From Pocillopora damicornis (lineage: Eukaryota): a stretch of 64,000 nucleotides of DNA. Each line of letters opens with the position of its first letter. The first letter of the stretch is position 1. Under the pieces are notes generated by a model, which worked only from the letters and a program-made list of their open reading frames with translations, had not been told where the DNA came from and searched no databases. The position numbers were made by a program, and so were the translations under genes. The stretch spans positions 248,001 through 312,000 of the forward strand of contig NW_020844534.1 in the NCBI RefSeq assembly GCF_003704095.1, read 5' to 3'. Below are positions 20,301 to 23,073 of the stretch, piece after piece.

Positions 20301-23073
20301 CATATTGTGTCAATAGAGACTGTTACCAATTGATGGAGGACATGAAGTTTTTAACTTGAGGGCTCCAGAAATTCCTACCACCTGTATCTACACCATCAGA
20401 CCATATCAAGCAGATGATGAGGTACATGATTGTATGGACATTTCTCAGTGAAACAAATCTCTTCTTTTCCTTAGCCCTTTACAGACTGACATCAGCATGC
20501 ACATTCCATGCTGTTCTTTATACATTTTCTAAGGTGCTGAAAAGGAAAATTTGTTTAATGATCAAGAGCTTTTTAAGTCATTTCTTCCATTCTCATGACC
20601 TTGATGTTTGAAATTAGCTGCTTGTCACTCTTAGCGGTTGGAGGATTAATGTTACATGCAACATTTGATTTGTGGAGCTTCCACAAGGGTTTTGTGCAGG
20701 GTGGAGAAGTGTTGTCGATAGATACTCATGTGTTGAAATGAACAACCAACATGTATTTTTTAAAATTTTTTTTACAACAAAACAGAATGATGGTGCAATT
20801 TGTTGAATTTGATTTTTCTTACCAGAAATCCTTGTATGAAATTTGTGTGTCCACATGTGATGACTGGGGAGATGGCCATGACTTATTTCCTGACAAACAA
20901 TTCAATATGGCAGGAGACAGGTCAGTAATTTATAGCAGTAATGTGGTTTTTCTATTTTTGTGTATGTGTGGTTCTCTTGATAGAAGATATATCTACAGTT
21001 TTTCCCCCCTGTACTCTTGAAGCCATGCCATCATCCCCTAGATTTGCTCTCTCTCAGTAGTTTAGTGTGTAACTTCACATATCTCTAACTGTGCTAACTT
21101 ACAAGAACTCCTCTGTGAGATGTTGAGGTTGTCAGGTCTTTACTGTAAAGATGAAAAGAGAGTGCCAGCTCCTTTGTGTATTACCATCAAGCAGAGGCTT
21201 TGTTCTGGATAAACTTTTGACATCTATTTGTGATTTAAGGCTAGACAAACTTCAAACCTGAAAAATGGTAAATGTCCTTAGCATCTGCCAAAAGTTTTTT
21301 TTCCCATCTCTCTCACTCTCTCTCCCTATCTCTCTCTTCTTTATAGGAATAAATTTTTTTTGTTAAAATAAATTTGATATTCAGTGTGCCTAGGGGAGAC
21401 AAAACATTGCTCGCTTGCTTGCTTGTTTGTTTGTTTGTTTGTTTATCACCTTTGGAAGCAACATAACAATTTATCTTACTATCCAATTGTCCTTTTTTCA
21501 GGTTTGTTGGTCCATATCTGAAGATCTGTCCTGAACATGTGTTTGTAGTGGAAGATGGTGATGGTATTTGTGGTTATGCAGTAGCAGCTCCTGATTCCAA
21601 ACACTTTTATGAGCAGTTCAAAAAACACTGGCTTCCAGAGGTATGTAAAAATTGGACTGCTCACTTGACTTGCCCATCAATGATAAAATTAAATAAGCTT
21701 TGCAGTATTTGTAAAGTTTGGATTGTGTTGTCTTACATTTTCAAGCTTGCCATTTTCAATCCATGTTAGTTTTCCACCTCTTTTTCCATTCTTGTTCAGT
21801 CATGCACTCCAACTAAACTGGTATTGTGTTTGTATCCTTTCTGTTACATTTAGTTGTGCACTAGAAGTAACTTGAATTTTCTGATAAGACCACAATGACA
21901 TCAGAATTCAGAAGTAAATTTCCATCAATGAATACATGTGCACACTAGTTAATCAATTGCCTTGAAAGCAGAGTTATTTTACAGCTTTGAAAACTGAAAT
22001 GTACAATTGTGAAGAAAACATTTTTCCTTTAGCTATTTGATTTGTTATTCACTGCTTCTTACATGTATGTTAGTCTTCATGTCATGCATCCTGGGTAGGT
22101 AAATATGTTATTGCCTGGGAGTGGCGTGACAGCGTGACTTCTTACATCATACACCACATATGGAAACTACTTTAATTGAATTGCCTTTGACTGAGTTGGC
22201 TGTCGGGTACAGTGTAACTGCTATCACTCTCCCTCCTCCACTTCAGTCTCTCAAATAATTGATTTCTCAGGTTTGCAAGAAGTACAAGATGCCAGCTGGG
22301 AATTCACCAGAGTGGACATATGCTGAACAACTTGCCAATAGCTTGCACAATCCAAAAATATTCCTTCCTGAAGATGTGTGTTTAAAGTTTGGTGCTCATG
22401 TACAGATCCATCTTCTTCCCAGAGCACAGGTACAAAGTTACTTCATATTTGAAGGGAATCCTAAAAGTGATAGTTATTTTAGTTGACATTAAAAATAAAA
22501 AGAGCTCTTCATGCATCAGTGAAAAGGGATAGTTGGTTAACCATGGAGACAAAGAATACAGATTTCAAAAGCTAGTTAGCAGTGCCATCTGCCATCTGTC
22601 TAACTTGCTAGTACTCTAATGCTGGAAATTACATTTCTGAGCTTCTAAATTTCAAGTTTTTGCCAGGGAAGCATGCCCCCAGACCCCTCTAGGGGAAAAG
22701 GACCTCACAACCCCCATTCCAGAAACAACCACCCATTTCACAATTGGAAACTGTTTGAGGAAAAGGTCATTGAAACCCTACACACCTAATAAGTTCACCA
22801 TGGTGACACCTCTACCTCCTTTTTTTTTTTTTTCTTTTTTTCTGCTAAGTGTGTTTTTCTACTATTTCCTTCTGATAGGATCTTGGTCTTGGCAAGCGGT
22901 TGTTAGCTTGTGTTCTTTCTGCACTCAAGGCTGAAGACTGTACTGGTGTGCACTGCGAGATAGCAACCACAAACAACAATGCTCTGGACTTCTACACCAA
23001 ATTAGGATTCTATGCTATTCCCCTCAAGGATCCAGCTCCTCCTGACATGCTTATCTTTGGTAGAACATTTTAA
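11346..23073 (+). CDS. OGA: Protein O-GlcNAcase (GH84 plus C-terminal GNAT/HAT-like domain), 14 exons, about 872 aa
   Basis: Exons 11346-11403, 11552-11603, 12815-12912, 13271-13401, 14039-14207, 14580-14678, 17185-17976, 18375-18628, 19524-19796, 20317-20421, 20826-20920, 21502-21640, 22271-22429 and 22879-23073 total 2619 nt in frame. Motifs: [19 protein letters not shown], catalytic [43 protein letters not shown]. Confidence 0.97.
13630..13769. mobile_element. Tc1/mariner-type MITE in OGA intron 4
   Basis: TIRs TACTGTATTTACCCGTGTACAAGTCGAC and GTCGACTTATACACAGGTAAATACGGTA, with TA at both ends. Confidence 0.85.
18769..19271. mobile_element. Tc1/mariner-type MITE nested inside a piggyBac-type MITE (host about 18636-19350)
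   Basis: About 30-bp TIRs TACCGTAAAAACCCGCAGATAAGCTGCACC and GGTGCAGCTTATCTGTAGGTTTTTATGGTA with TA duplication. The flanks join up into a copy of the 60436-60640 family. Confidence 0.85.
19376..19447 (+). ncRNA. Intronic box C/D snoRNA, U54/SNORD54-like
   Basis: Box C GTGATGA 19384-19390, C'-like GTGATTA, box D CTGA 19437-19440, terminal stem CAACAG(T)/(G)CTGTTG. The guide ATATACGCTA is complementary to conserved 18S rRNA UAGCGUAUAU. Box D lies about 83 nt upstream of the 3' splice site. Confidence 0.85.

Follow-up and report, generated by a model that had tools for sequence, protein, structure and literature searches.

The window analysed here, a stretch of 64,000 nucleotides from contig NW_020844534.1 of Pocillopora damicornis, contains the gene for O-GlcNAcase (OGA), and the subject of this report is the C-terminal, GNAT-like domain of the encoded protein, the counterpart of the pseudo-HAT (pHAT) of human OGA. 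The gene is the single OGA of a Pocillopora-type stony coral: the 899-residue OGA proteins of P. verrucosa (P0202) and P. meandrina (P0200) are covered in tblastn from residue 1 to residue 899 by its 14 exons, at approximately 97 to 100% identity per exon, profile PF07555 (GH84) matches the exons at 12786-12926, 14012-14224, and 17091-17990, and the gene is the sole GH84 locus of its own 234-Mb assembly (4393 contigs searched). It is already annotated in public databases, where one Stylophora entry bears the transferred name "Bifunctional protein NCOAT." The GH84 and GNAT-like domains belong to one transcript, as PF07555 matches the upstream exons and RNA contigs join exons 7 to 14; the RNA runs containing the stretch carry coral or marine-metagenome labels, and no splice form without exons 13 and 14 was present in the RNA contigs of the runs examined. 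The gene and the parts of its C-terminal half are listed below, where the P-loop is the pyrophosphate-binding loop of GNAT proteins and OgpAT is the acetyl-CoA-binding bacterial homologue from Oceanicola granulosus, whose residue numbering is used throughout (alignment A1).

11265-23073, + strand: OGA gene, 14 coding exons (tblastn with Pocillopora proteins, PF07555 matches)
20317-20421, + strand: exon 10, last part of the linker and beginning of the C-terminal GNAT-like (pHAT) domain (RNA joints 19796/20317 and 20421/20826, open frame 0)
20826-20920, + strand: exon 11, helix alpha1 region (RNA joints, open frame)
20853-20855, + strand: Thr codon in exon 11, equivalent of OgpAT Thr25 and human Met735 (alignment A1, columns ICVSTCDD versus human-type ICREMYDD)
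21502-21640, + strand: exon 12, strands beta2-beta3 of the GNAT core (RNA joints, alignments to PDB chains and human OGA)
22271-22429, + strand: exon 13, inserted helices and strand beta4, the last codon (22427-22429) encoding Gln, the first P-loop residue (translation, OgpAT alignment, RNA joints)
22394-22417, + strand: strand beta4 (AHVQIHLL) in exon 13 (translation)
22430-22878, + strand: intron 13, GT..AG, phase 0, splitting the P-loop between Gln and Asp (flanking bases, RNA joints)
22879-22893, + strand: P-loop residues 2 to 6 (D-L-G-L-G) at the start of exon 14 (translation; in the model the helix begins at the fifth loop residue, past strand beta4)
22879-23073, + strand: exon 14, with P-loop, helix, strand beta5, downstream motif, and C-terminus, coding 22879-23070 and stop 23071-23073 (Pfam, ungapped alignments)
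22972-23010, + strand: downstream motif N-x-x-A-x-x-FY-x-x-LGF, its first Asn equivalent to OgpAT Asn175 (human Asp884) and its Tyr to Tyr182 (human Tyr891)

The P-loop is assembled by splicing. The in-frame translation of exon 13 ends in LLPRAQ and that of exon 14 opens with DLGLGKRLL, with GT directly after 22429 and AG directly before 22879; the junction is in phase 0, and the loop thus reads Q/DLGLG, fitting the GNAT consensus [Q/R]xxGx[G/A]. The joint 22429/22879 (raw 22427>22877, cut +2; GT..AG) occurs in RNA contigs of four out of four runs, from four different studies, and the same runs also carry each of the six junctions that precede it in the C-terminal half. The database proteins of P. 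verrucosa and P. meandrina share this junction and match exon 14 with 100% identity. An earlier note, made from the letters of the window alone, had proposed that this splice creates a Q-x-x-G-x-G loop followed by a downstream N-x-x-A-x-x-FY-x-KLGF motif, and had called for the junction to be looked for in RNA; the translation and the RNA joint agree with it on both motifs. Its identification of the two as the GNAT P-loop and downstream motif was also correct, since they align with those of the acetyl-CoA binders OgpAT (QGRGVG) and SsAT of Streptomyces sviceus (QGRGYG) (PMC3814719, PMC3919268). The reading QDLGLG is not a chance match, because it sits at the aligned P-loop position of both bacterial proteins and is conserved in other corals.

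Membership of the GNAT family was assessed by searching the exons one by one, with P0202, P0200, and a further pocilloporid protein (P0208), identical over exon 14, standing in for the whole protein. Exon 14 alone scored 29.2 bits against Pfam Acetyltransf_1 (PF00583; cut-off, 20.7), and P0202 scored 36.3 bits against the same profile and 35.0 bits against PF13508 (cut-off, 27). The PF00583 score was the highest among the ten OGAs compared: corals reached 36 bits, Corticium 34, a crinoid 31, Dysidea 22, a ctenophore 21, and sea anemones 20 to 21, and the vertebrate protein gave no match, an order that parallels the order of loop states described below. Exon 14 aligned without gaps to human OGA 855-915, SsAT 198-251, and OgpAT 146-190; exon 12 aligned to Trichoplax pHAT 6r45 (E = 5e-9), OgpAT 3zj0 (E = 2.5e-8), and human OGA 756-799; exon 13 gave a single, weak PDB match, to OgpAT 102-143, ending exactly at Gln143; and exon 11, too short a query, matched nothing in the PDB. 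The AlphaFold2 model of P0208 has a predicted local distance difference test score above 90 across the tail domain, and places a strand at residues 576-582, the loop at residues 587-592, and the start of a helix at 591. Its best PDB match in Foldseek was the OgpAT-acetyl-CoA complex 3zj0 (target-normalised TM score, 0.92; root mean square deviation, 1.9 A), followed by Trichoplax pHAT 6r45 (TM, 0.88), SsAT 4bmh (TM, 0.89), and then other GNATs, and on this model the coral tail domain is a GNAT fold. From the loop to strand beta5, the coral domain and OgpAT are equal in length; a helix insertion relative to Tetrahymena GCN5, which has been blamed for blocking the cofactor in pHATs (PMC12494797), is therefore also present in a cofactor binder.

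Stony corals retain eight of 11 signature positions (Thr25, His133, Gln143, Gly146, Gly148, Asn175, Ala178, and Tyr182) and depart from OgpAT at the other three, with Asp for Gly144, Gln for His135, and His or Tyr for Asp137. The states of the groups compared were as follows.

Stand-alone bacterial-type enzymes and sponges: Thr at position 25 in most; H-x-H-I-D on strand beta4; P-loop QGxGxG in most; Asn175, Ala178, and Tyr182 kept
Stony corals: Thr25 kept; His, Gln, and His or Tyr at positions 133, 135, and 137; P-loop QDLGLG; Asn175, Ala178, and Tyr182 kept
Ctenophores: Thr25 lost; second His lost; P-loop QGKGMG; Asn175 lost; Tyr at position 178; Tyr182 kept
Human: Met at position 25; Lys at the second His; P-loop TDPSVA; Asp at position 175; Tyr182 kept

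On strand beta4 the first His of the pair is thus kept and the second is Gln (AHVQIH in the coral versus AHGHID and AHLHID), and many GNATs are known to function without a dedicated base (PMC3919268). The sequence features by which the human domain is recognised as a pseudo-HAT are divided. At human Pro854 and Ser855, where the P-loop consensus is absent, the coral has Leu and Gly and fits it; at human Met735, which clashes with the pantothenate arm of the cofactor, and at Asp884, it has Thr and Asn, like the Thr25 and Asn175 that contact this arm in OgpAT (PMC3814719, where the roles of Asn175 and Tyr182 are described). The acidic residue beside the pyrophosphate site (human Asp853) is shared, being the first residue of exon 14. 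The coral thus retains two elements lost in human OGA, motif A and the downstream motif, as the earlier note had claimed, together with the pantothenate-arm Thr and Asn. The human comparison on which that claim was built was likewise accurate: vertebrate sequences read TDPSVA at the loop position, and the human segment aligned to exon 14 reads SVAK... and ...DDKRILEFYSKLGC.

Five known systems frame the comparison. OgpAT (3zj0; PMC3814719) shares with the coral a nearly identical strand beta4 and loop start (IDLLPRAQ versus IHLLPRAQ), Gly146, Gly148, Thr25, Asn175, Ala178, and Tyr182, and an ungapped course from loop to downstream motif, but it stands alone, its gene lying next to a GH84 gene, whereas the coral domain is fused, and it has Gly144, His135, and Asp137 where the coral has Asp, Gln, and His. 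SsAT (4bmh; PMC3919268) has the same fold and aligns ungapped over exon 14; it too stands alone, and it differs in having both His185 and His187, of which the coral has only the first, and Gly at loop position 2. The pseudo-HAT of human OGA (approximately residues 700 to 916) is the orthologous domain, in the same place in a multidomain protein and alignable without gaps, and shares Asp853 and Tyr891, but its loop TDPSVA lacks the initial Gln/Arg, has Pro854 and a Ser for the central Gly, and is accompanied by Met735, Asp884, and Lys844 for the second His; it has no Pfam GNAT match and does not bind acetyl-CoA (PMC3814719). The pHAT of Trichoplax adhaerens (6r45; PMC12494797) is likewise a nonbilaterian OGA tail of the same fold, but its loop VPEKVI lacks both Gln/Arg and Gly, and exon 14 as a sequence query did not find it at E <10. 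Finally, the OGAs of sponges (Corticium, Dysidea, and Oscarella) and ctenophores (Mnemiopsis and Bolinopsis) are GH84-GNAT fusions with a complete P-loop, and differ from the coral in having QGxGxG, with Gly at position 2 as in bacteria; the sponges keep His-x-His-I-D, and the ctenophores are without Thr25, His135, and Asn175.

The published binding data come from other branches of the animal tree. By surface plasmon resonance, acetyl-CoA binding was negative for seven pHATs (human, mouse, chicken, zebrafish, fly, worm, and Trichoplax), a set including no cnidarian, sponge, or ctenophore domain (PMC12494797). In the species of this set whose loops were checked (vertebrates and Trichoplax), all loops are degenerate; the failure of the Trichoplax domain to bind is uninformative about the coral loop, since its own loop is degenerate. 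In OgpAT, the triple change G144D/R145P/G146S, modelled on human Asp853-Pro854-Ser855 and the only combination tested, abolishes binding (PMC3814719), and cofactor binding by GNATs is mostly through main-chain atoms (PMC3919268). Current work describes the human pHAT as a domain that dimerises and binds peptides or histone tails (PMC12494797, PMC12747287). A dissociation constant of 5 mM for acetyl-CoA is given for OgHAT in PMC12494797, versus 8.7 uM in the 2013 paper on the same protein; the former is probably a unit slip.

To place the coral loop among those of other animals, OGAs were gathered by a HMMER scan with exon 14 and by word searches, and 221 sequences of at least 500 residues were counted; a word search with the Montipora tail domain gave only seven proteins, and whole-protein searches were needed. 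The consensus [Q/R]xxGx[G/A] was fitted by 31 OGAs, all from stony corals, sponges, or ctenophores, and Asp occupied loop position 2 in 188 of the 190 that did not fit. QDLGLG is present in Pocillopora, Stylophora, and Montipora; sponges and sponge-like sequences have QGLGVG, QGKGTG, and QGKGVG, a stand-alone-length sequence of Oscarella has QGSGVG, and ctenophores have QGKGMG. The pattern QxxGxG is thus kept in other corals, sponges, and ctenophores in a cross-animal comparison of the kind that the earlier note had suggested. Among further cnidarian sequences, coral locus L004 reads QNLGLG and locus L005 reads HSLGIG, both with canonical splice sites, and two proteins read RISGLG (P0005) and QGRELG (P0197). 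Sea anemone loops are degenerate (RDHFLA in Nematostella, QDHFLM in Actinostola and Exaiptasia, QMHFPM in Actinia), as are VPEKVI of Trichoplax (residues 658-663, authors' AF3 model) and the xDxSxx loops of all bilaterians sampled, among which echinoderms retain the central Gly (EDQGLI, QDVGVT) and arthropods other than Drosophila have LDQSIS-like loops. No medusozoan or octocoral OGA turned up in these searches, which therefore do not cover those groups. Across approximately 20 other GNAT loops of the same genome, position 2 is R, G, or K and never acidic.

Two sets of irregular sequences came to light in the same survey. Short open reading frames resembling exon 14, including QDLGLG, occur on ENA contigs from outside this genome (P0002 and P0008); they have one residue deleted from the helix that follows, along with many radical substitutions, and may be decayed extra copies of the last OGA exon in another coral genome. 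A second, divergent OGA-like group (P0043, P0059, P0032, P0009, and P0038; full length, 863 to 950 residues) has loops LDVGAS and LDSSEA, unlike the main vertebrate type TDPSVA, and may be a paralogue in some vertebrates.

In corals the tail region is under strong purifying selection. Between the window and coral locus L004, the five tail-domain exons, summed exon by exon, gave a synonymous divergence (dS) of 0.84 and a dN/dS ratio of 0.068; a segment of 44 residues, LGLG through GFY, shows no difference, and close to it the two corals differ only at loop position 2, where L004 has Asn for Asp. Pocilloporidae and Acroporidae have the same loop, the latter family including Montipora, which lies across the deepest split of stony corals from the side of Pocillopora. 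In L004 the intron between OGA exons 12 and 13 measures approximately 4.6 kb, versus 630 bp in the window, and a retroelement with a 787-residue reverse-transcriptase open reading frame (RVT_1, zf-RVT; 5368-7731, - strand) lies inside it.

The reading that we favour, with a probability of about 0.5, is that the coral OGA tail is an expressed GNAT-fold domain transitional between an acetyl-CoA-binding acetyltransferase and the cofactor-dead pseudo-HAT of bilaterians. The architecture of the cofactor site is intact, with strand beta4, QDLGLG, the helix, and the equivalents of Thr25, Asn175, Ala178, and Tyr182 in place and the alignment to the acetyl-CoA-binding bacterial homologues free of indels. 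As judged from sequence, the pocket would be close to working order, while its job would be mainly independent of the cofactor: the domain may act chiefly as a flexibly tethered, dimerising module that binds peptides or histone tails and tunes the hydrolase, with the derived Asp at loop position 2 guarding the pyrophosphate pocket and possibly capping the N-terminus of the helix in place of the cofactor phosphates. The near-invariance of this Asp in dead loops suggests a useful role in the cofactor-free domain, and since the central Gly is gone from sea anemones, which are closely related to corals, any domain function common to Hexacorallia does not need the loop. Within this reading, binding of acetyl-CoA or CoA with useful affinity by the coral domain would be slightly less than an even prospect, and transfer of acetyl groups by it appears unlikely.

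The direction of change assumed in the transitional reading follows from the distribution of loops. The ancestral animal loop is best read as QGxGxG, which is common to bacteria, sponges, and ctenophores, so that the assignment holds whether sponges or ctenophores are the earlier branch. The coral would then be one step along, with both Gly residues kept and Gly144 replaced by the Asp that later became near-invariant in dead loops. The suggestion of the earlier note that the coral represents the ancestral state did not survive this comparison, because sponges and ctenophores have QGxGxG, the sponges with His-x-His, and the coral has the derived Asp and a Gln for the second His; its own caveat, that a loop sharing the Asp of the human dead loop may be an intermediate, holds, given the presence of Asp in 188 of the 190 degenerate loops.

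Several observations weigh against a domain that has largely left its cofactor behind: (i) the motif and contact residues are those that a working GNAT needs, and the domain could simply be active; (ii) the effect of Asp was not separated from that of the other two changes in OgpAT, where only the triple change was tested (PMC3814719); (iii) L004, with Asn for Asp, shows that the negative charge is not essential in corals; (iv) Gly-x-Gly is conserved on both sides of the deepest split among corals and in no fewer than two other cnidarian lineages (HSLGIG and RISGLG), which is hard to explain if nothing binds; (v) the fold tolerates Phe at the central Gly, as anemone loops show; and (vi) the helix-capping role of Asp is itself only inferred.

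The foremost alternative to the transitional reading is that the coral domain is a working cofactor-binding GNAT, using acetyl-CoA or another acyl-CoA and acetylating a protein or small-molecule acceptor or coupling OGA activity to acetyl-CoA levels, which we regard as a serious possibility at a little under even odds. Coral OGA would in that case be bifunctional or metabolite-sensing, as the earlier note had suggested it may be. It accounts well for the complete [Q/R]xxGx[G/A] with the equivalents of Thr25, Asn175, Ala178, and Tyr182, for the absence of any indel relative to OgpAT or SsAT from loop to downstream motif, for the acetyl-CoA complex 3zj0 as top structural match, for the top GNAT profile score among the OGAs compared, and for a loop that is identical in Pocilloporidae and Acroporidae within a strongly constrained region. 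It is also favoured by the mostly main-chain nature of the cofactor contacts in GNATs (PMC3919268), and the published negative results, as far as loops were checked (vertebrates and Trichoplax), all come from species with degenerate loops. It is less easily reconciled with the Asp beside the pyrophosphate site, common to 188 of 190 degenerate loops and absent from approximately 20 other GNAT loops of the genome, with a Gln where the bacterial and sponge His-x-His pair has its second His, and with anemones, which are without the central Gly and yet keep the domain.

A more far-reaching proposal, which we advance tentatively and with the balance leaning against it, extends activity to all three groups with complete loops. 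The OGAs of sponges, ctenophores, and stony corals would be true two-function proteins with an acetyl-CoA-binding tail, and the disputed NCOAT idea would hold for the earliest animals; the domain would have lost its function in steps, first by Gly to Asp at position 2 (the coral stage) and then as the loop glycines disappeared from anemones, placozoans, and bilaterians, leaving the coral as the last living stage at which O-GlcNAc removal is coupled to acetyl-CoA.

At the other extreme, the loop could be a frozen relic, its Gly kept only for the turn from beta4 into the helix and the domain no more able to bind the cofactor than its human counterpart, its pocket without any remaining function; seven of seven eukaryotic pHATs tested fail to bind acetyl-CoA (PMC12494797), and variation at four of six positions among cnidarian loops (QDLGLG, QNLGLG, HSLGIG, RISGLG, QGRELG, QDHFLM) suggests relaxed side-chain constraint, but we consider this very unlikely, since anemones (Phe) and the cnidarian P0197 (Glu) replace the central Gly, so that the fold does not require it, and corals hold Gly-x-Gly, Asn175, and Thr25 despite saturated synonymous divergence. 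Horizontal transfer or contamination was rejected, as the coral tail is 60% identical to that of Nematostella and lies on the same transcript as GH84; the location of the sponge and ctenophore OGA genes on contigs of 8 to 20 Mb is cited against contamination there.

Whether OGA is an acetyltransferase has been disputed since 2004, and the question was answered in the negative from human, mouse, chicken, zebrafish, fly, worm, and Trichoplax proteins. That set omitted the animal lineages still carrying the cofactor-binding signature, and early-branching animals offer a test of whether the "dead" OGA domain was once active. If the coral, sponge, or ctenophore domains bind acetyl-CoA, the claim that eukaryotic OGA tails cannot do so will have to be restricted, the origin of a pseudoenzyme could be placed in time on the tree of animals through natural intermediates (QGxGxG to QDxGxG to xDxSxx), and a direct nutrient-signalling link from acetyl-CoA to O-GlcNAc would have existed in early animals; if they do not, the series would show that the motif alone predicts activity poorly. 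We found no paper on the P-loops of coral, sponge, or ctenophore OGAs, although most subscription journals lay outside the search and absence is not proof.

Some minor observations concern the remainder of the window and the genome. Within two OGA introns (19296-19482 and 20418-20604), RNA contig depth is 10 to 20 times that of the flanking exons in four out of four runs, with many loose ends, and these stretches are probably copies of a dispersed repeat transcribed elsewhere and not OGA message. Just upstream of the OGA gene lie two intronless, paralogous open reading frames (7647-8813, - strand, 388 residues, and 9897-10709, - strand, 270 residues), both with a SOCS box at their end (PF07525; 30 and 35 bits); the SOCS box of the longer frame is broken by approximately 30 consecutive Asp, Glu, and Gly residues, and only its first half matches. 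Elsewhere in the coral genome, two tandem clusters of intronless GNAT genes (L006-L016, L020, L022, and L027) look like lineage-specific expansions: one on contig C2139 (approximately 10 to 73 kb) has six copies, mostly with the loop RRMGIA, and the other on C667 (approximately 6 to 38 kb) has seven matches, with RGKGYG or RKKGIA.

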